Shown piece by piece: positions 25,116 through 42,305 of a stretch of 64,000 nucleotides of DNA. Under the pieces are notes generated by a model. It did no database searches, was not told where the DNA came from, and worked only from the letters and a program-made list of their open reading frames with translations. Both the position numbers and the translations under genes were made by a program. Source of the DNA: Auanema rhodensis (taxonomy: Eukaryota; Animalia; Nematoda); contig OZ059900.1 of the NCBI GenBank assembly GCA_964057225.1, positions 9,300,001 to 9,364,000 on the forward strand, written 5' to 3'. The first letter of the stretch is position 1. Each line of letters begins with the position of its first letter.

Positions 25116-25413
25116 ACACTTACGTTTTCATCTTCAAACTGTCATTTAATCCTCTGAATCTATACTTTTGGTAATTAAACTCGGCCAATTCATCAGCAGA
25201 GACAAGACTTCCTTCGCGTAAGCTTTGCTTTATTTCACTAAGCATTTATTCCATTTTATCAAACATCATACAATGAAGTTTGAGATGTTTCACTTGTAAG
25301 ATGTGAGTTAACCGGTCTTCTACTCGAGTATGAGAAGCAAACTCGGTTAACTTCTGTTCACAAAGATCTCTGATTTGTTCATCACTGAGATCGTTTTCGT
25401 TGTTCATGCTCAT
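25116..25413 (-). pseudogene. Repeat gene B, copy 1 (truncated within its intron by the array edge)
   Basis: Same sequence as copy 2; in-frame TAA at 25246-25248; last exon missing. Confidence 0.6.
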
Positions 25414-25650
25414 CTCTTTAACTGGAAATAAGTATTTAACTTTAAAAACAACAGCAATTCCAATAAAATGATCGAAAACATTAAAAAAACATATAAAATT
25501 GTTATACAGAAGAATAATTAAATCGATATAGTGTTTGAAATTCTCGCAATATCTAACTATCCCGCGTATTATTAGAGCACATAAGTGGTTATCAACAACC
25601 ATTCTTTCTTAAACTTATTTTTTAATTCTTCAAAGACTATTAACAAAGAG

Positions 25651-25674
25651 AAAAAGGTTTACGGCACCCGGGAT
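25651..25674 (-). pseudogene. 5S rRNA 3'-end remnant plus T-run, copy 1
   Basis: ttacggcacccgggat (25659-25674) is identical to 27240-27255 of the intact 5S gene and is preceded by the same agaaaaag. Confidence 0.75.
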
Positions 25675-26418
25675 GACTTACGTGAGGGATCAGATTTGTT
25701 CAATTGGTGAATATCTTATTTTTTCTTTCATAAAATTGAATATATATATAAATATATGATAAACATAAAGTTTTTATATAAAAGTCACAAAACAATTTAG
25801 AGTAACTGAAATCTTTATAAACACATGTCACTAGTAGCCCGAGCCCTTTCCTTCATATTCATCAATTTATATACAAATATATTTTTATTACATAGTTCGT
25901 CATGAATATGTAGATAAAGAGAAACATTAGAAGAAAATTATTTTGAAAAAAGTATAATATACCGTACACCACAACTCTCTATAAAACATTCTCAGGATAA
26001 TTCCCAAATTTGCCCTTTAAACTCATTTAATATGCTGTTGAGAAAATGAGCACAAAATTTAAATTTTTTTTTAAAAAGTGAATGAAAATGTTTCTTCAAG
26101 TTTACTCCAATTGTAGTTTTCGAAATAATTTCTATCATACCAGTTCGAATGATGATAATGGTATGTGAAATATATAAACGCTTTAAGCATTCATAAGATT
26201 TTTATTTTCTTAAAAATAGTACAAAATTGAAAAATTGTTAAAAGTCTTGCGGTCATCATAACCTTAAACAAGTTCTAATTCAAAAATAAAAAAAACAAAT
26301 CACAGCATATTCACAGAATACAATCAAGTTATTTGAATACAAATAACATAATTCACAAGACAAAGGCAAAAATTCATAATTTAATAGAATATAGCATACA
26401 GTTTACAACTCACTATGT

Positions 26419-26991
26419 TTAATCCTTGTTATCTATAATTTCTTTGAAATATCTTCTAGTCTCCTCATATTCTGTCATTAATGGCTTTGGAACTGTCATG
26501 TTGTTATCGAAATAAACTTCGATTTCACTGGCAAGAAATCGAAGATGCTGAGTCATAAGGGAATGAAGCTTTCGATATTCTTTGAACATGTTATTTTTAT
26601 GCTCTTGTTCTCTTCTATAGTTTTCCTCTTCAGCTAATTCAATTTTCATTAAAACTTGTTCAATTTTCCGATGCATCTTTGTTTCGTCTGTCAGTAAACC
26701 AAAATCAAAGAGCATACGATTATTCATTTCTTCGTCGTCGGAAACTGTTCCGTTGTTGTGATTTAGTGCTTTCTATTATAAACGATCAAGAGATTCATAA
26801 AGGAGATATTATCCAAACCTTGTTACTACTGTTTTCAGTGGACATCACGTTTCTTCTTCTACTCTGCCGAATATTTTGTGATTGTCTCTTTGACTCTTTT
26901 CTCACAACTTTTCCTTCATTAACAAATGATTCATCAACAAAATTCTACAACAATATAAATTGGAAATAACATAACAAAATTTACTAACCAT
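26419..26991 (-). CDS. Repeat gene A, copy 1: three-exon, 160-aa charged helical protein of unknown function
   Basis: Exons 26991-26989 (ATG), 26944-26819 and 26772-26419. GT-AG introns of 44 and 46 nt, both phase 0, remove the stops. TTTTCAG trans-splice-like acceptor 47 nt upstream. M-NFVDESF...SSNK-KALNHNNG...KEIIDNKD. Confidence 0.8.
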
Positions 26992-27225
26992 TTTGATCTT
27001 CGATGACCTACTTGGTTAAACTAAGACAATTGAAATTACTGAAAAATAAAAGAATTAAATTTTAAAAAAGTATTTAACAAGCTATATATGTAAAAAAATA
27101 ATAATTGGAAATAGAATCATTACGACATTTGGAGCATTTTTTATTTAAAATATAATTTATTCGCGCGTATCAATAGAGCGTGTATCTGATTATCAATAAC
27201 TATTTTCTTAAACTTTTTTTTTCTG

Positions 27226-27237
27226 AAAAAAGAAAAA
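27226..27237 (-). terminator. Pol III terminator (T5-C-T6) of the 5S gene; repeated in each unit
   Basis: TTTTTCTTTTTT at the 5S 3' end. Confidence 0.85.
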
Positions 27238-27355
27238 GCTTACGGCACCCGGGATTCCCAAGCCGTCTCCGATCCAAGTACTAACCGGGCCCAACGTTGC
27301 TTGACTTGCCAGATCGGACGGGATGGCGTACTTTCAACGTGGTATGGTCGTAAGC
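27237..27355 (-). rRNA. 5S rRNA, copy 1
   Basis: 119 nt, GCTTACGACCATACCACGTTGAAAGTACGCCATCCCGTCCGATCTGGCAAG...GGGAATCCCGGGTGCCGTAAGCT; closely resembles nematode 5S; ends pair to form helix I. Confidence 0.98.
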
Positions 27356-27378
27356 GAAGGCAAAGTTTTGTTGTACGC

Positions 27379-27384
27379 TTATAA
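27379..27384 (-). promoter_or_regulatory. TATA-like element at -24 to -29 of the 5S gene; repeated in each unit
   Basis: TTATAA at the position where 5S genes commonly have an upstream TATA-like motif. Confidence 0.55.
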
Positions 27385-27729
27385 CAGTCAACTTCGCTGG
27401 CCGTGGTATCAGAAAGTGCACAACTTTTGGCAGAAATAAAACATCTGCGTTATATTCTTTTATTCATTGTCTTATGAAAAGAAAACCGTCTTTTATTTTT
27501 TTACATCGTGAAATGAATATTCTATTGCTCATTTCGTTTACATGAAATGATATATTAAATAACTTTTCCATGATCATTAATATATCCACAAGTACTATCA
27601 GGTATTTATTATAAATAAAATAAAAAATATAAACAAAGTATAATAATTGTTTATTATAACAAAAAACAAATTTATAGTTAAATATCGAATAAATAAAATC
27701 TCAAGTAGATGTCTGTCAGTTGTTAAGTT

Positions 27730-28089
27730 TTATTCAGGATCATTGAAAACCTCGGCGCTGAAAAGAAACTTCATTACAAATCAGAATTACAACACTTACG
27801 TTTTCATCTTCAAACTGTCATTTAATCCTCTGAATCTATACTTTTGGTAATTAAACTCGGCCAATTCATCAGCAGAGACAAGACTTCCTTCGCGTAAGCT
27901 TTGCTTTATTTCACTAAGCATTTATTCCATTTTATCAAACATCATACAATGAAGTTTGAGATGTTTCACTTGTAAGATGTGAGTTAACCGGTCTTCTACT
28001 CGAGTATGAGAAGCAAACTCGGTTAACTTCTGTTCACAAAGATCTCTGATTTGTTCATCACTGAGATCGTTTTCGTTGTTCATGCTCAT
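27730..28089 (-). pseudogene. Repeat gene B, copy 2: two-exon paralogue of gene A with an internal TAA
   Basis: TTTCCAG acceptor 8 nt before ATG; exon 28089-27800; 42-nt GTAAGT...TTTTCAG intron; exon 27757-27730 with AATAAA over the stop. 105 codons, TAA at codon 56 (27922-27924). Confidence 0.7.
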
Positions 28090-28326
28090 CTCTTTAACTG
28101 GAAATAAGTATTTAACTTTAAAAACAACAGCAATTCCAATAAAATGATCGAAAACATTAAAAAAACATATAAAATTGTTATACAGAAGAATAATTAAATC
28201 GATATAGTGTTTGAAATTCTCGCAATATCTAACTATCCCGCGTATTATTAGAGCACATAAGTGGTTATCAACAACCATTCTTTCTTAAACTTATTTTTTA
28301 ATTCTTCAAAGACTATTAACAAAGAG

Positions 28327-28350
28327 AAAAAGGTTTACGGCACCCGGGAT
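28327..28350 (-). pseudogene. 5S rRNA 3'-end remnant, copy 2
   Basis: Copy 1 + 2676. Confidence 0.75.
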
Positions 28351-29094
28351 GACTTACGTGAGGGATCAGATTTGTTCAATTGGTGAATATCTTATTTTTT
28401 CTTTCATAAAATTGAATATATATATAAATATATGATAAACATAAAGTTTTTATATAAAAGTCACAAAACAATTTAGAGTAACTGAAATCTTTATAAACAC
28501 ATGTCACTAGTAGCCCGAGCCCTTTCCTTCATATTCATCAATTTATATACAAATATATTTTTATTACATAGTTCGTCATGAATATGTAGATAAAGAGAAA
28601 CATTAGAAGAAAATTATTTTGAAAAAAGTATAATATACCGTACACCACAACTCTCTATAAAACATTCTCAGGATAATTCCCAAATTTGCCCTTTAAACTC
28701 ATTTAATATGCTGTTGAGAAAATGAGCACAAAATTTAAATTTTTTTTTAAAAAGTGAATGAAAATGTTTCTTCAAGTTTACTCCAATTGTAGTTTTCGAA
28801 ATAATTTCTATCATACCAGTTCGAATGATGATAATGGTATGTGAAATATATAAACGCTTTAAGCATTCATAAGATTTTTATTTTCTTAAAAATAGTACAA
28901 AATTGAAAAATTGTTAAAAGTCTTGCGGTCATCATAACCTTAAACAAGTTCTAATTCAAAAATAAAAAAAACAAATCACAGCATATTCACAGAATACAAT
29001 CAAGTTATTTGAATACAAATAACATAATTCACAAGACAAAGGCAAAAATTCATAATTTAATAGAATATAGCATACAGTTTACAACTCACTATGT

Positions 29095-29667
29095 TTAATC
29101 CTTGTTATCTATAATTTCTTTGAAATATCTTCTAGTCTCCTCATATTCTGTCATTAATGGCTTTGGAACTGTCATGTTGTTATCGAAATAAACTTCGATT
29201 TCACTGGCAAGAAATCGAAGATGCTGAGTCATAAGGGAATGAAGCTTTCGATATTCTTTGAACATGTTATTTTTATGCTCTTGTTCTCTTCTATAGTTTT
29301 CCTCTTCAGCTAATTCAATTTTCATTAAAACTTGTTCAATTTTCCGATGCATCTTTGTTTCGTCTGTCAGTAAACCAAAATCAAAGAGCATACGATTATT
29401 CATTTCTTCGTCGTCGGAAACTGTTCCGTTGTTGTGATTTAGTGCTTTCTATTATAAACGATCAAGAGATTCATAAAGGAGATATTATCCAAACCTTGTT
29501 ACTACTGTTTTCAGTGGACATCACGTTTCTTCTTCTACTCTGCCGAATATTTTGTGATTGTCTCTTTGACTCTTTTCTCACAACTTTTCCTTCATTAACA
29601 AATGATTCATCAACAAAATTCTACAACAATATAAATTGGAAATAACATAACAAAATTTACTAACCAT
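29095..29667 (-). CDS. Repeat gene A, copy 2
   Basis: Copy 1 + 2676; identical ORF in the track. Confidence 0.8.
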
Positions 29668-29912
29668 TTTGATCTTCGATGACCTACTTGGTTAAACTAA
29701 GACAATTGAAATTACTGAAAAATAAAAGAATTAAATTTTAAAAAAGTATTTAACAAGCTATATATGTAAAAAAATAATAATTGGAAATAGAATCATTACG
29801 ACATTTGGAGCATTTTTTATTTAAAATATAATTTATTCGCGCGTATCAATAGAGCGTGTATCTGATTATCAATAACTATTTTCTTAAACTTTTTTTTTCT
29901 GAAAAAAGAAAA

Positions 29913-30031
29913 AGCTTACGGCACCCGGGATTCCCAAGCCGTCTCCGATCCAAGTACTAACCGGGCCCAACGTTGCTTGACTTGCCAGATCGGACGGGAT
30001 GGCGTACTTTCAACGTGGTATGGTCGTAAGC
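29913..30031 (-). rRNA. 5S rRNA, copy 2
   Basis: Identical to copy 1. Confidence 0.98.
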
Positions 30032-30405
30032 GAAGGCAAAGTTTTGGTGTACGCTTATAACAGTCAACTTCGCTGGCCGTGGTATCAGAAAGTGCACAAC
30101 TTTTGGCAGAAATAAAACATCTGCGTTATATTCTTTTATTCATTGTCTTATGAAAAGAAAACCGTCTTTTATTTTTTTACATCGTGAAATGAATATTCTA
30201 TTGCTCATTTCGTTTACATGAAATGATATATTAAATAACTTTTCCATGATCATTAATATATCCACAAGTACTATCAGGTATTTATTATAAATAAAATAAA
30301 AAATATAAACAAAGTATAATAATTGTTTATTATAACAAAAAACAAATTTATAGTTAAATATCGAATAAATAAAATCTCAAGTAGATGTCTGTCAGTTGTT
30401 AAGTT

Positions 30406-30765
30406 TTATTCAGGATCATTGAAAACCTCGGCGCTGAAAAGAAACTTCATTACAAATCAGAATTACAACACTTACGTTTTCATCTTCAAACTGTCATTTA
30501 ATCCTCTGAATCTATACTTTTGGTAATTAAACTCGGCCAATTCATCAGCAGAGACAAGACTTCCTTCGCGTAAGCTTTGCTTTATTTCACTAAGCATTTA
30601 TTCCATTTTATCAAACATCATACAATGAAGTTTGAGATGTTTCACTTGTAAGATGTGAGTTAACCGGTCTTCTACTCGAGTATGAGAAGCAAACTCGGTT
30701 AACTTCTGTTCACAAAGATCTCTGATTTGTTCATCACTGAGATCGTTTTCGTTGTTCATGCTCAT
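30406..30765 (-). pseudogene. Repeat gene B, copy 3
   Basis: Copy 2 + 2676; same internal TAA. Confidence 0.7.
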
Positions 30766-31002
30766 CTCTTTAACTGGAAATAAGTATTTAACTTTAAAAA
30801 CAACAGCAATTCCAATAAAATGATCGAAAACATTAAAAAAACATATAAAATTGTTATACAGAAGAATAATTAAATCGATATAGTGTTTGAAATTCTCGCA
30901 ATATCTAACTATCCCGCGTATTATTAGAGCACATAAGTGGTTATCAACAACCATTCTTTCTTAAACTTATTTTTTAATTCTTCAAAGACTATTAACAAAG
31001 AG

Positions 31003-31026
31003 AAAAAGGTTTACGGCACCCGGGAT
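31003..31026 (-). pseudogene. 5S rRNA 3'-end remnant, copy 3
   Basis: Copy 1 + 5352. Confidence 0.75.
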
Positions 31027-31770
31027 GACTTACGTGAGGGATCAGATTTGTTCAATTGGTGAATATCTTATTTTTTCTTTCATAAAATTGAATATATATA
31101 TAAATATATGATAAACATAAAGTTTTTATATAAAAGTCACAAAACAATTTAGAGTAACTGAAATCTTTATAAACACATGTCACTAGTAGCCCGAGCCCTT
31201 TCCTTCATATTCATCAATTTATATACAAATATATTTTTATTACATAGTTCGTCATGAATATGTAGATAAAGAGAAACATTAGAAGAAAATTATTTTGAAA
31301 AAAGTATAATATACCGTACACCACAACTCTCTATAAAACATTCTCAGGATAATTCCCAAATTTGCCCTTTAAACTCATTTAATATGCTGTTGAGAAAATG
31401 AGCACAAAATTTAAATTTTTTTTTAAAAAGTGAATGAAAATGTTTCTTCAAGTTTACTCCAATTGTAGTTTTCGAAATAATTTCTATCATACCAGTTCGA
31501 ATGATGATAATGGTATGTGAAATATATAAACGCTTTAAGCATTCATAAGATTTTTATTTTCTTAAAAATAGTACAAAATTGAAAAATTGTTAAAAGTCTT
31601 GCGGTCATCATAACCTTAAACAAGTTCTAATTCAAAAATAAAAAAAACAAATCACAGCATATTCACAGAATACAATCAAGTTATTTGAATACAAATAACA
31701 TAATTCACAAGACAAAGGCAAAAATTCATAATTTAATAGAATATAGCATACAGTTTACAACTCACTATGT

Positions 31771-32343
31771 TTAATCCTTGTTATCTATAATTTCTTTGAA
31801 ATATCTTCTAGTCTCCTCATATTCTGTCATTAATGGCTTTGGAACTGTCATGTTGTTATCGAAATAAACTTCGATTTCACTGGCAAGAAATCGAAGATGC
31901 TGAGTCATAAGGGAATGAAGCTTTCGATATTCTTTGAACATGTTATTTTTATGCTCTTGTTCTCTTCTATAGTTTTCCTCTTCAGCTAATTCAATTTTCA
32001 TTAAAACTTGTTCAATTTTCCGATGCATCTTTGTTTCGTCTGTCAGTAAACCAAAATCAAAGAGCATACGATTATTCATTTCTTCGTCGTCGGAAACTGT
32101 TCCGTTGTTGTGATTTAGTGCTTTCTATTATAAACGATCAAGAGATTCATAAAGGAGATATTATCCAAACCTTGTTACTACTGTTTTCAGTGGACATCAC
32201 GTTTCTTCTTCTACTCTGCCGAATATTTTGTGATTGTCTCTTTGACTCTTTTCTCACAACTTTTCCTTCATTAACAAATGATTCATCAACAAAATTCTAC
32301 AACAATATAAATTGGAAATAACATAACAAAATTTACTAACCAT
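31771..32343 (-). CDS. Repeat gene A, copy 3
   Basis: Copy 1 + 5352; identical ORF in the track. Confidence 0.8.
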
Positions 32344-32588
32344 TTTGATCTTCGATGACCTACTTGGTTAAACTAAGACAATTGAAATTACTGAAAAATA
32401 AAAGAATTAAATTTTAAAAAAGTATTTAACAAGCTATATATGTAAAAAAATAATAATTGGAAATAGAATCATTACGACATTTGGAGCATTTTTTATTTAA
32501 AATATAATTTATTCGCGCGTATCAATAGAGCGTGTATCTGATTATCAATAACTATTTTCTTAAACTTTTTTTTTCTGAAAAAAGAAAA

Positions 32589-32707
32589 AGCTTACGGCAC
32601 CCGGGATTCCCAAGCCGTCTCCGATCCAAGTACTAACCGGGCCCAACGTTGCTTGACTTGCCAGATCGGACGGGATGGCGTACTTTCAACGTGGTATGGT
32701 CGTAAGC
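32589..32707 (-). rRNA. 5S rRNA, copy 3
   Basis: Identical to copy 1. Confidence 0.98.
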
Positions 32708-33081
32708 GAAGGCAAAGTTTTGTTGTACGCTTATAACAGTCAACTTCGCTGGCCGTGGTATCAGAAAGTGCACAACTTTTGGCAGAAATAAAACATCTGC
32801 GTTATATTCTTTTATTCATTGTCTTATGAAAAGAAAACCGTCTTTTATTTTTTTACATCGTGAAATGAATATTCTATTGCTCATTTCGTTTACATGAAAT
32901 GATATATTAAATAACTTTTCCATGATCATTAATATATCCACAAGTACTATCAGGTATTTATTATAAATAAAATAAAAAATATAAACAAAGTATAATAATT
33001 GTTTATTATAACAAAAAACAAATTTATAGTTAAATATCGAATAAATAAAATCTCAAGTAGATGTCTGTCAGTTGTTAAGTT

Positions 33082-33441
33082 TTATTCAGGATCATTGAAA
33101 ACCTCGGCGCTGAAAAGAAACTTCATTACAAATCAGAATTACAACACTTACGTTTTCATCTTCAAACTGTCATTTAATCCTCTGAATCTATACTTTTGGT
33201 AATTAAACTCGGCCAATTCATCAGCAGAGACAAGACTTCCTTCGCGTAAGCTTTGCTTTATTTCACTAAGCATTTATTCCATTTTATCAAACATCATACA
33301 ATGAAGTTTGAGATGTTTCACTTGTAAGATGTGAGTTAACCGGTCTTCTACTCGAGTATGAGAAGCAAACTCGGTTAACTTCTGTTCACAAAGATCTCTG
33401 ATTTGTTCATCACTGAGATCGTTTTCGTTGTTCATGCTCAT
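33082..33441 (-). pseudogene. Repeat gene B, copy 4
   Basis: Copy 2 + 5352; same internal TAA. Confidence 0.7.
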
Positions 33442-33678
33442 CTCTTTAACTGGAAATAAGTATTTAACTTTAAAAACAACAGCAATTCCAATAAAATGAT
33501 CGAAAACATTAAAAAAACATATAAAATTGTTATACAGAAGAATAATTAAATCGATATAGTGTTTGAAATTCTCGCAATATCTAACTATCCCGCGTATTAT
33601 TAGAGCACATAAGTGGTTATCAACAACCATTCTTTCTTAAACTTATTTTTTAATTCTTCAAAGACTATTAACAAAGAG

Positions 33679-33702
33679 AAAAAGGTTTACGGCACCCGGG
33701 AT
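33679..33702 (-). pseudogene. 5S rRNA 3'-end remnant, copy 4
   Basis: Copy 1 + 8028. Confidence 0.75.
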
Positions 33703-34446
33703 GACTTACGTGAGGGATCAGATTTGTTCAATTGGTGAATATCTTATTTTTTCTTTCATAAAATTGAATATATATATAAATATATGATAAACATAAAGTT
33801 TTTATATAAAAGTCACAAAACAATTTAGAGTAACTGAAATCTTTATAAACACATGTCACTAGTAGCCCGAGCCCTTTCCTTCATATTCATCAATTTATAT
33901 ACAAATATATTTTTATTACATAGTTCGTCATGAATATGTAGATAAAGAGAAACATTAGAAGAAAATTATTTTGAAAAAAGTATAATATACCGTACACCAC
34001 AACTCTCTATAAAACATTCTCAGGATAATTCCCAAATTTGCCCTTTAAACTCATTTAATATGCTGTTGAGAAAATGAGCACAAAATTTAAATTTTTTTTT
34101 AAAAAGTGAATGAAAATGTTTCTTCAAGTTTACTCCAATTGTAGTTTTCGAAATAATTTCTATCATACCAGTTCGAATGATGATAATGGTATGTGAAATA
34201 TATAAACGCTTTAAGCATTCATAAGATTTTTATTTTCTTAAAAATAGTACAAAATTGAAAAATTGTTAAAAGTCTTGCGGTCATCATAACCTTAAACAAG
34301 TTCTAATTCAAAAATAAAAAAAACAAATCACAGCATATTCACAGAATACAATCAAGTTATTTGAATACAAATAACATAATTCACAAGACAAAGGCAAAAA
34401 TTCATAATTTAATAGAATATAGCATACAGTTTACAACTCACTATGT

Positions 34447-35019
34447 TTAATCCTTGTTATCTATAATTTCTTTGAAATATCTTCTAGTCTCCTCATATTC
34501 TGTCATTAATGGCTTTGGAACTGTCATGTTGTTATCGAAATAAACTTCGATTTCACTGGCAAGAAATCGAAGATGCTGAGTCATAAGGGAATGAAGCTTT
34601 CGATATTCTTTGAACATGTTATTTTTATGCTCTTGTTCTCTTCTATAGTTTTCCTCTTCAGCTAATTCAATTTTCATTAAAACTTGTTCAATTTTCCGAT
34701 GCATCTTTGTTTCGTCTGTCAGTAAACCAAAATCAAAGAGCATACGATTATTCATTTCTTCGTCGTCGGAAACTGTTCCGTTGTTGTGATTTAGTGCTTT
34801 CTATTATAAACGATCAAGAGATTCATAAAGGAGATATTATCCAAACCTTGTTACTACTGTTTTCAGTGGACATCACGTTTCTTCTTCTACTCTGCCGAAT
34901 ATTTTGTGATTGTCTCTTTGACTCTTTTCTCACAACTTTTCCTTCATTAACAAATGATTCATCAACAAAATTCTACAACAATATAAATTGGAAATAACAT
35001 AACAAAATTTACTAACCAT
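34447..35019 (-). CDS. Repeat gene A, copy 4
   Basis: Copy 1 + 8028; identical ORF in the track. Confidence 0.8.
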
Positions 35020-35264
35020 TTTGATCTTCGATGACCTACTTGGTTAAACTAAGACAATTGAAATTACTGAAAAATAAAAGAATTAAATTTTAAAAAAGTA
35101 TTTAACAAGCTATATATGTAAAAAAATAATAATTGGAAATAGAATCATTACGACATTTGGAGCATTTTTTATTTAAAATATAATTTATTCGCGCGTATCA
35201 ATAGAGCGTGTATCTGATTATCAATAACTATTTTCTTAAACTTTTTTTTTCTGAAAAAAGAAAA

Positions 35265-35383
35265 AGCTTACGGCACCCGGGATTCCCAAGCCGTCTCCGA
35301 TCCAAGTACTAACCGGGCCCAACGTTGCTTGACTTGCCAGATCGGACGGGATGGCGTACTTTCAACGTGGTATGGTCGTAAGC
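35265..35383 (-). rRNA. 5S rRNA, copy 4
   Basis: Identical to copy 1. Confidence 0.98.
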
Positions 35384-35444
35384 GAAGGCAAAGTTTTGTT
35401 GTACGCTTATAACAGTCAACTTCGCTGACCGTGGTATCAGAAAG

Positions 35445-35740
35445 TGTCGCGGTTAGTGATTATTTCTTTTATTTTTCCTATATTTTGCTCCATTTTAGAT
35501 TTTGTTTTTCATCGTTTCTCTCTACTTTGTCTATTTCAGATTGTACTTTTCGGCCCGCCTTCCTATATCGTCATCTTTAGGATCAAAAACACTTTATACC
35601 TCAACCAAACCTCAACGGACTATAGACGATCTATATTTTGTTGAATTGTTGATTCTTTAATAAAGCATTCTACCACTGATTATCTGTTCTATTGATCCTC
35701 AGCGGAATACCGACAACCGAATACCTTCGCCGAATAGACA
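35445..35740 (+). repeat. 5' LTR (296 bp)
   Basis: Begins TGTC where the array sequence breaks off and ends GACA one base before the PBS; contains AATAAA; partly repeated at 39610-39724. Confidence 0.85.
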
Positions 35741-39724: not shown

Positions 39725-41216
39725 GTGCAAGACCGGATCAACCCGTAAGATGGAGCTAGCGAGCAATACAATTTCATGAAGAAACAGTAATTGTGAATTT
39801 TAGACTGAAACAGACAAATAAGCCAAACAATAGCGATCACACTATATTTAACTTTAATTAAGCATTATTTCTTGCTAATTTTATCTCTGTCAATCTCTTA
39901 GCAAAGTTTGTTGTAAATTGTAACCTGACTGGCTGCATTGGGTTTTTCAATTTTTCTCATTTTTCAATGTAAACTGAAATTTTTTCCAATATAATCTTTC
40001 TATTTAAATAATCATTTCTGTTGTCCCGAGTGACCAAACAGTTACAACTCTGAATAAACCATACAGCACTAGTAATCCAATTAATCTTCAATATGGGTTG
40101 AATTCGAACATTACTGTAAGTAAGAGCCATTGTCGAATCTGTACTCTACTCTCAGTTATCGTGTTGACTTATAATGTCTTTTACATTAAGCCGAAACAAC
40201 AAATAAGCTTGAAAAGTATTGTTAAAATCAAAAAAAGATACTCAAACTGTTTGTACAAACTTTTTTCAATTGATTCTACGCTTTCATGACATCACGGAAT
40301 TAATTCCAGTGAAAAGTGTTATTGACAGAGATAGTTTTGTATTTTTTTTTCAGAATCAATATGAAGAATGAACGATTATGATCATGTAAAAAATAAGAAG
40401 AATAGGATTACGGTAGTTATTCTTTATTTTATTTCTTAACATTCGCTCTATTGATAATTTTAAATATTTCTCGTTAATTGAAGGTTATCACATAAACTGT
40501 TTTTTTCATAATGAGCGTTGTTAAAAGTTTCAGGAATTTCCATTCATCATGAGAAAGATTTTTTTTCCATTTATATACGGTTTGTGATTATTGTTCCAAT
40601 AAATAACATAATAGTGCCTGATTTCGTAGTGTTTCTTTTTTTTTCTTTAATTTTTCCAATAGGAAAGATTGGAAACCTCAGATTTTATATTTGAAATAGC
40701 TTTTTCTACATCTAGCTTGCCAGAAAATTGTTCTCAAATTCATAGAATTACTTGGTGCATCAAACATATACATCTGAGTGGAGAGATAAGTCGCTTAAGA
40801 TTATTAAAGTTAGATAATACTGACGCAGTTTACAGGTAAAGGTTAATAAACTACTTTTATTTATCAAAAACGGCATTTTAGGAGATAGAAGCAATCATGG
40901 GTTATGATCCTAATAGTAACTTGAAAGTGCTTTATTTACTTATCTGACAAGTACTGTATTCAAGAATGAGGATTCTCAATAGTTCAATTTCTAATATATA
41001 TATAACAAACAACAGAGTTACGGTAATTATTAAATAATTATTTAATTGAACTCTGCTCTATTGTTAAATTTAAATATTTCTCGTCACGAATATTGTAAAC
41101 ATCTTACTAATTTCATCATTCATTTTATTGATTAAAATTTTTTTGTACTTTAATCGTAATGTGTTGGTAATGTGTACATTTTAGTTTTATTATCTTTAGC
41201 AACGGGAATATTGAAG

Positions 41217-42305
41217 ATGGAGGAAAAGGACTATCATTTGAATCCACGTGTTAGATTTCTTGGAAAAGAACTCAAGCACATGGCGAATGATCTTCTTACC
41301 CGTAAAAGAGAATTGGATTGTCTTAATTATAAGATTGAGCAGCATAATGCAAATTATTTTTGGGCCAAACAGGAGTTTGTGTTTTATATGAAAGAAGTCA
41401 ATCATGGAGATACTTGCGATAATACTGAGAGAATCGAACCATTCAGCTTTTCAAGTGGTTATGAAGATATTGTGAATGAAATGGATGATTTGTGTGGTGA
41501 ACTGTTGGATACCATGGACACACTTTATGATTCCTTGAGCGCGAGAATACTTGATATAGAAAGACTTGGCCCAGTTTTGAAATATGTTGCCAACGAACAG
41601 AAGAAGACGATTCTCACTTGCAATCATCTCAATGATTTGATGTTTAGCCGCTGTAACGAGAAAGTGAGAACCATATTTTGGTTAATTATTTTGGTTAAAT
41701 GGTTTTTAGAAGTATCTTGAGGATCCAACGAGTAAAATCACTAACCACCAAATTATAAGTTTGATTCAACACGTGGTGAACATTTCTTGTCATTCTCGTG
41801 TATATTATTTAGTTTCAGACTGCATTCGGACATTGGATAATGCCAGGAGCTCCATTGACCTTAGTTAAAGTGGTGGTAAACATGTCTTTAATTATAAATC
41901 TGGAAAACATTTTTTTCAGTCTCTCTTACGGGAACAAAAGGAAGTACCAATTAAGGATATTAGTCCTACAGCCTTCTATCATGTTAGGAACTATGTAAGA
42001 TACTCCATTATTTTTATTTTTTCAATATTTGTTGTATCAGATCAACACAAAGCTCACGTCTAATCCTGTTAAAATTCAAAAAATAGCTTATCCTTATGTT
42101 AATACCGGAAATGTATCTTATACAGTTGATGATATGAAATATATATATGATATGGTTAGTTTGATTTTTATTTTATTAAGATGATTAGAGTATTCAGGTG
42201 AGAAGGGACAGAGATGTACCAGCGCACCAGCCATTTGGAGTTCAACCTTTTCCAGCTGTTCTCAACCTTTTTGATAATTCAGAAGAAACTATAAATAATG
42301 AGTAA
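41217..42305 (+). CDS. Six-exon gene, 288-aa protein of unknown function (helical N-terminal half)
   Basis: Exons 41217-41663, 41710-41775, 41819-41875, 41920-41994, 42041-42154 and 42198-42305. Five GT-AG introns of 46, 43, 44, 46 and 43 nt splice to one open frame. Start codon uncertain. Confidence 0.85.

Follow-up and report, generated by a model that had tools for sequence, protein, structure and literature searches.

In Caenorhabditis elegans, the 5S ribosomal DNA (rDNA) unit is ~1 kb long and carries the gene for the SL1 spliced leader. In 1995, Drouin and de Sa are said to have reported the linkage of 5S rDNA to several multigene families, including histone genes, the U1 and U2 small nuclear RNA (snRNA) genes and 45S rDNA. 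The 5S clusters of Caenorhabditis have been described (PMC8961926), rDNAs can occur in linkage with one another or with further genes (PMC6562748), and dual 5S systems with distinct flanks are exemplified by the oocyte and somatic types of Xenopus (PMC6562748). The 5S genes are thus established companions of a few housekeeping multigene families (SL1, histone, snRNA and 45S genes); what differs in the case described here is the partner, an orphan protein family, and the dispersal of most of the cassettes. Our subject is a tandem array in a 64,000-nucleotide (nt) stretch of the Auanema rhodensis genome (the window; positions 9300001-9364000 of contig OZ059900.1, hereafter C8), the repeat unit of which carries 5S ribosomal RNA (rRNA) sequences and two protein genes, A and B. 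The reading that we consider probable is that cassettes made of a 5S gene and a gene of one protein family are dispersed along C8, that the unit in the window consists of two such cassettes in series, and that the array was recently amplified.

Like a nematode 5S-SL1 unit, the unit in the window combines a 5S gene with a second gene in one tandem repeat. Unlike such a unit, it has no SL1 gene (the Rfam search of the window found only 5S genes, and SL1 genes lie in 252-bp arrays of their own on C3; C1 and C3 are other contigs of the same genome), its partner is a spliced protein-coding orphan gene, and the cassettes occur mostly as dispersed single copies. The genome (181 Mb, 31% G+C, with U2 genes, short introns, and SL1 and SmY matches below the Rfam gathering scores) also contains a U2+5S+5S array on C1. 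As in the linkages to histone, snRNA and 45S genes, 5S travels and amplifies with another multigene family; in contrast to those linkages and to that with the spliced leader, the partner is a lineage-restricted protein family without known function or relatives, and the cassettes, ~26 in number, are scattered and in several states of decay. As in Xenopus, 5S genes with different flanks coexist, here in at least three classes with the same or nearly the same RNA (the C3 arrays, the U2-linked array on C1 and the modules on C8), with the difference that the RNA sequences are identical or nearly so and that the classes are known from sequence alone. A literature search found no description of 5S cassettes with an orphan protein family, which is weak evidence of novelty.

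The array begins within the intron of gene B and ends within the element upstream of the 5S gene (Table 1). A period scan revealed mismatches between successive unit copies at three positions only, so the four copies in the window must stem from a very recent amplification. All four 5S genes match model positions 1-120 of RF00001, that is, at full length and above the gathering threshold, share 97.5-100% identity with their counterparts in the main C3 arrays and, like every C8-type 5S gene, are directly followed by a T-run, as expected of an RNA polymerase III (Pol III) terminator. When one unit was compared with itself by BLAST, the sole significant internal match was that of 25560-25674 with 27161-27255 (115 columns, 70% identity, E = 1.5e-10). 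The remainder was AT-rich noise: the coding regions of A and B had no similarity at the DNA level, and outside the conserved spacer 3' of the 5S gene (the block) no spacer aligned between the two halves of the unit. Two statements of the initial annotation are borne out here, namely that a block at 25560-25620 aligns with 27161-27218, and that this block is better conserved than the coding DNA. Its third, that a 16-nt exact remnant of a 5S 3' end with a T-run lies upstream of gene B, is also correct, the string 25659-25674 being identical to 27240-27255 (5S positions 101-116) and followed by the T-run. The unit is two cassettes of one kind in series, in the same order and orientation, of which cassette B has lost 5S positions 1-100 together with the upstream element. 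Genes A and B are found in every unit, and the partner gene is thus within the repeat and itself multicopy (44 family matches).

Table 1. Features of the tandem array (window coordinates) and U2 sequences near other C8-type 5S genes
Feature	Position	Strand	Details
Tandem array	25116..35447	-	3.86 copies of a 2676-bp unit; period scan, repeat families
Gene B, exon 1	25124..25413	-	Start at 25413; GTAAGT donor after base 25124
Cassette B, 3' spacer (block)	25560..25650	-	Core at 25560-25580; version most like the C1 U2/5S spacer
Cassette B, 5S remnant and T-run	25651..25674	-	5S positions 101-116
Gene A, intact	26419..26991	-	Three exons, 160 amino acids; model read from sequence
Gene A, exons	26991-26989 (ATG only), 26944-26819, 26772-26422 plus stop codon	-
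Cassette A, T-run terminator and 3' spacer (block)	27161..27236	-	21-nt core at 27161-27181
Intact 5S rRNA gene, unit 1	27237..27355	-	Rfam RF00001, 107.5 bits (gathering score 38)
Upstream element, conserved, ~80 nt	27356..27436	-	TATAAG ~25 nt before C8-type 5S genes; module alignment
Gene B, last exon (short)	27757-27733	-	Seen in unit 2
Further intact 5S copies	29913-30031, 32589-32707, 35265-35383	-	Rfam; 2676 bp apart
U2 upstream of C8-type 5S genes	L054:2876-4001, L052:2123-2294, L043:3010-3517, L044:8571-8760

Some 26 dispersed modules of the C8 type lie within a 4.7-Mb stretch of C8, each comprising the upstream element of ~80 nt, a canonical 5S gene, the T-run and the conserved 3' spacer, and most of them have a family gene or a fragment of one within 150-350 bp on the same strand. 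This scatter of cassettes along one chromosome argues that the 5S gene and the family gene were copied together many times. Genome-wide censuses of the parts all led to C8: the block has 17 copies (between 5.69 and 10.24 Mb), the upstream element 23 matches (nhmmer E values of 1e-9 to 4e-22 at 17 modules) and the family profile at least 44 matches (between 6.18 and 10.34 Mb). A 5S gene lies directly before the block in every copy retrieved, one such gene being interrupted by an insertion, and the block is followed by a whole family gene or by the N-terminal or C-terminal part of one, save for a single case in which nothing was detected; at the module at 10.19 Mb no family sequence was detected downstream. 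The initial annotation had proposed looking for 5S genes or remnants next to other family members, and several members on C8 do adjoin them. In particular, a 5S gene and block precede the deeply diverged members m9645k and m9536k in the same position and orientation, as well as family fragments at 5.69, 10.05, 10.24 and 10.32 Mb; at member m9975k a 5S gene is placed and oriented likewise, without the block. Three further modules (L064:579-792, L065:581-794 and L067:2557-2844, at C8:10.047, 10.058 and 9.981 Mb) have the 5S gene, upstream element and block core and are followed by a gene that does not belong to the family; at the module at 9.981 Mb a later exon of this gene resembles a second orphan family (family 2, described below; pairwise E = 3e-5).

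A search of the genome with exon 3 of gene A returned three groups of matches, all on C8: near-identical copies, copies 87-96% identical (at 6.98 and 10.32-10.33 Mb), and more than 20 matches of 22-34% identity in open frames of ~180 amino acids (aa). (The database queries were exon 3 of A and two pieces of B; the joined three-exon model of A entered only the shuffle test described below.) The splice sites of gene A are kept in the copies at C8:6.98 Mb and 10.317 Mb, and a first exon that consists of the ATG only, followed by a GTTAG intron, is an unusual arrangement common to the A types and the m9645k type. Gene B, as initially noted, contains an in-frame stop (TAA at 25246-25248), which is present in all four copies; at this position the intact B paralogues have GAA or AGA. 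The two B pieces led to these paralogues, which are intact open frames of 161 aa at C8:9.858 and 10.087 Mb, and each is preceded, at ~215 bp and on the same strand, by a complete 5S gene, exactly at the site of the remnant in the window. The remnant can therefore be regarded as the leftover of a real 5S gene. The ratio of nonsynonymous to synonymous substitution rates (dN/dS) is 0.15-0.34 for the A types and 0.7-1.3, from few substitutions, for the B types, a difference that sets A, as a working gene, apart from a drifting B lineage. Thus, gene A is apparently a working gene under purifying selection, and the window's gene B is apparently a decayed, pseudogene-like copy from a short B-type lineage whose evolution is nearly neutral.

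A homologue of the block is the spacer 3' of the 5S genes in the C1 array of U2+5S+5S units (nhmmer E values of 3e-5 and 5e-3), and in alignments the likeness to the C1 spacer extends ~40 nt past the block, the B-type spacers being the most C1-like. This homology indicates that the block is inherited 5S spacer and is not peculiar to the protein family. As a result, the block is not a family-specific promoter, and the initial suggestion that it may be the promoter could apply at most to its 21-nt core (consensus GYGCTCTAYTGATACGCGGGA, of which the CGCGGGA half is C8-specific). In the copy of A at 10.317 Mb, which has lost its 5S gene, homology to the window starts exactly at the core; moreover, sites resembling the core are found 145-250 bp before the large exon of five loci that have no 5S gene (members m10066k, m9656k, m9768k and m9835k, and one open reading frame (ORF) of family 2), with scores of 8-34 against a maximum of 7.1 among 3000 background segments. 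Only the core behaves as gene-associated, and we infer that it may have been recruited as a promoter-proximal element. A conserved TCAAAC is found ~25 nt downstream of the core, a position that, as a conjecture, would fit a transcription start there. Variants of the block follow gene type, with forms specific to A, to B and to m9645k.

Three other placements of the block and of the family were tried and rejected. The ATACGGTGCAC-like box of the SL1, U2 and SmY promoters only loosely resembles the core, and an snRNA-type proximal element is rejected as unsupported. A general element downstream of 5S genes is likewise rejected, since the main C3 arrays lack the block, which has a homologous spacer after the U2-linked 5S genes of C1 and so marks one 5S lineage only. 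A search for a family gene within the unit of the C1 array gave no match (best E = 0.14).

The history of the cassettes is legible in part from their junctions and flanks. The window's B and a degenerate B at 6.986 Mb agree in their deletion junction and in the sequence upstream of it, and the order A-B-A is found at both arrays (9.33 and 6.98 Mb, with periods of 2676 or 2679 bp); together these argue that the A-B composite, 5S deletion included, is older than the separation of the two arrays, between which the A genes have a synonymous divergence (dS) of ~0.16. From the core onward, however, the window's B is 93-98% identical to the stand-alone B copies and 81-88% identical to the B at 6.986 Mb, which points to later conversion. 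Other flanks are mosaic too: B_9858k and B_10086k have identical blocks and upstream elements that are 75% identical, and m9536k and x9540k have identical blocks and upstream elements that are 67% identical. Across modules whose flanks differ by 15-25%, the 5S genes are 99-100% identical, a near-invariance that requires selection on, or homogenisation of, the 5S gene. The invariant 119-nt gene would be the obvious crossover site behind the mosaic flanks, and conversion through 5S genes could lend the linkage an appearance of greater uniformity, and leave its age in more doubt, than was initially assumed.

The initial annotation held that the linkage of 5S and gene is old and not a one-off capture. 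Its recurrence at the diverged members m9645k, m9536k and m9975k speaks for this claim, though the mosaic flanks blur the age of the linkage. The alternative that survives best, though we regard it as rather unlikely, is that one member gained a U2/5S fragment and that copies of the 5S module later reached the promoters of its paralogues, so that the linkage would be younger than the divergence of the proteins. Gene conversion or ectopic recombination would supply the route of copying, and several observations suit it: between cassette types the flanks show 77-86% identity, a level equal to that between the two A arrays; blocks can be identical where upstream elements have diverged; and the deletion junction of the window's B matches one copy while its gene part most resembles others. 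What argues against such a capture is that block variants track gene type, that the core, including its CGCGGGA half, survives ahead of deeply diverged members lacking a 5S gene, and that losses of the 5S gene are directly seen (in the window's B, in the copy of A at 10.317 Mb, where core and gene were kept, and as a truncated 5S gene at 10.185 Mb), whereas gains never are.

Several points weigh against the reading that cassettes of long standing were dispersed along C8. Of the full-length family members, only some 25% are now accompanied by a 5S gene. The flanks resemble each other no less across cassette types than across the two A arrays, and recent homogenisation therefore fits as well as old constraint. 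The protein tree of the family is star-like, and an approximately unbiased (AU) test ruled out that the 5S-linked members all form one clade (p-AU = 1e-15), given that m9975k falls among unlinked members; the linkage must then have been gained or lost at least twice. A clade of the block-bearing lineages A, B and m9645k was not rejected (p = 0.20). A family without detectable relatives offers no outgroup species for comparison, and the gene models, the promoter role of the core and the expression of the 5S genes are inferred. Because the 5S changes seen are losses only, and because the core with its C8-specific half is found in unlinked members, early linkage with repeated loss is favoured. 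Linkage to the 5S gene appears recurrent and is probably old, its age being blurred by exchange through the 5S genes.

The tandem unit had also been called an ancient dimer of one 5S-block-gene monomer, the genes of which are paralogues. The paralogy is confirmed at the level of the family: a profile of 21 other members, built without A and B, matches the A types (E = 3.5e-17 to 1.5e-15, profile positions 67-176), the two intact B copies (E = 4.5e-11 and 2.4e-10, positions 100-179) and the degenerate B at 6.986 Mb (E = 5e-6), which places A and B in one family, and the window's B, read through its stop, matches the family profile with E = 2.8e-20. Compared directly, the two proteins are far less informative. 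Their Smith-Waterman score is 51, against 33-35 +/- 6 for shuffled sequences (p ~0.01-0.02), and phmmer with A alone did not find B. The gapless protein alignment originally reported is thus marginal as a pairwise match, although its KLH..SEI..EF..YF register is the one that MAFFT gives in the family alignment; the LTDE/LSDE motif said to be common to both has no stable register. A and B are thus paralogues at family level only.

Two like cassettes do stand in the unit in the same order and orientation. The strict form of the dimer, in which a single monomer was duplicated in tandem and A and B are direct duplicates that diverged in place, we hold to be quite improbable. Tandem duplicates are usually neighbours, and an AU test did not reject A and B as one clade (p-AU = 0.31). 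Against this, the identity of A and B is 14-17%, no higher than that of either with other members (12-29%); the nearest neighbour of B in the tree is m10339k, with which it has a C-terminal motif and an insertion in common; stand-alone B-type cassettes with a whole 5S gene exist at two other sites; and the halves of the unit align nowhere beyond the block. The tree neither supports nor rejects a sister relationship of A and B. Since A and B, two of at least 44 members, are no more alike than any two members, and since B is nearest to m10339k, the unit is better described as two cassettes placed side by side, and duplication of a monomer in place within it we do not consider shown. That A and B are unrelated ORFs that arose by chance in AT-rich spacer, with the 5S flank alone duplicated, is barely credible: the marginal pairwise score and the phmmer miss are what one would expect of it, but a match of both to an independent profile refutes it unless that match is a compositional artefact, and it is opposed as well by the conserved splice sites, by twenty-odd intact family ORFs of ~180 aa (dN/dS 0.24-0.55 for divergent members) and by a confident AlphaFold model of the family (predicted local distance difference test score 89.5).

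This model is all-helical, with four helices, and a Foldseek comparison of it with the Protein Data Bank gave only non-significant matches to helical bundles and coiled coils. A Pfam scan of seven members returned nothing above threshold, and a word-based comparison of the family alignment with 5.8 billion proteins gave no match. A full hidden Markov model (HMM) search of 1.84 billion representatives gave three, all to long proteins (971-2365 aa) and each in 7-12 separate stretches; we read these as matches to repeats of the coiled-coil type and not as relatives. By these searches and the predicted fold, the family is a C8-restricted, fast-evolving orphan of ~180-aa, putatively all-helical proteins with no credible relative elsewhere. 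Three of its paralogues (L039:4303-4842, L039:6237-6776 and L032:2889-3428) are nearly identical over their C-terminal ~57-75 residues and strongly different over the N-terminal two thirds, and look like a gene-conversion mosaic.

The ORF at L027:82-621, a candidate distant member of this family, was ruled out by hhalign and belongs to family 2. Matches to that second orphan family number at least 17 and are confined to C8 (7.1 to 10.4 Mb), and its genes often have a family-1 gene on the same strand less than 2 kb away. One member is in the window (41259-41693, plus strand); upstream of it, two diverged repeats (40398-40474 and 41008-41084) carry GCTCTATTG[A/T]TAA, which resembles the first half of the block core.

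Several further features concern the C8 modules and the other 5S classes. U2 snRNA genes, or tandem partial U2 sequences with a period of ~164 bp, lie just upstream of many C8-type 5S genes (Table 1), which fits descent from a U2/5S array unit. Cassettes occur repeatedly as inverted, palindromic pairs (C8:5.690/5.694, 6.984-6.987/6.993-6.996, 10.185/10.189 and 10.319/10.330 Mb), that at 5.69 Mb being an inverted pair of 5S gene, block and a 22-aa fragment. At C8:9.539 Mb (L053:3083-3615) a C8-type 5S gene is broken in two (positions 1-68 and 72-119), the interruption being an insertion of ~417 bp with a mir-3923-like match below threshold. SmY-like genes just under the Rfam threshold lie downstream of some modules (L044:9604-9683, L045:4410-4489 and L034:1065-1144), and at L044 and L045 a piece from the middle of an m9645k-like gene is fused to the 5S module. 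The C3 arrays (L046-L051, C3:12.09-13.47 Mb) have units of ~529 bp, in each of which the spacer contains the 5' part of the 5S gene (positions 1-33 or 5-33) once or twice; the complete gene is missing from some units.

Under the reading that we favour, of dispersed 5S-family cassettes of which two form the unit in the window, the cassettes would have spread through segmental and tandem duplication, and identical 5S genes would have served as substrates for ectopic recombination or conversion that reshuffled their flanks. The promoter-proximal core of the family would have been recruited from the 5S 3' spacer, and such a recruitment would imply that the 5S linkage dates from the early history of the family and was lost repeatedly. 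A further step, which we put forward as possible if somewhat doubtful, is that a young family, perhaps the second one too, was born or first expressed beside a U2/5S fragment and took its core from the 5S 3' spacer, after which genes of Pol III and RNA polymerase II (Pol II) multiplied as one cassette, with the invariant 5S gene offering recombination a landing pad and at the same time giving the promoters of the family a fixed neighbour in open chromatin.

Whole cassettes, cassettes without the 5S gene, cassettes without the protein gene and a tandem unit of two cassettes together form a graded series on one chromosome. The series is a natural record of the co-duplication of Pol III genes with neighbouring Pol II genes, of ectopic exchange promoted by identical small genes, and of how spacer DNA may be recruited as a promoter. 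That the 5S classes of this genome are used differentially would be pure conjecture; at least three classes with different flanks in one genome make such differential use testable.

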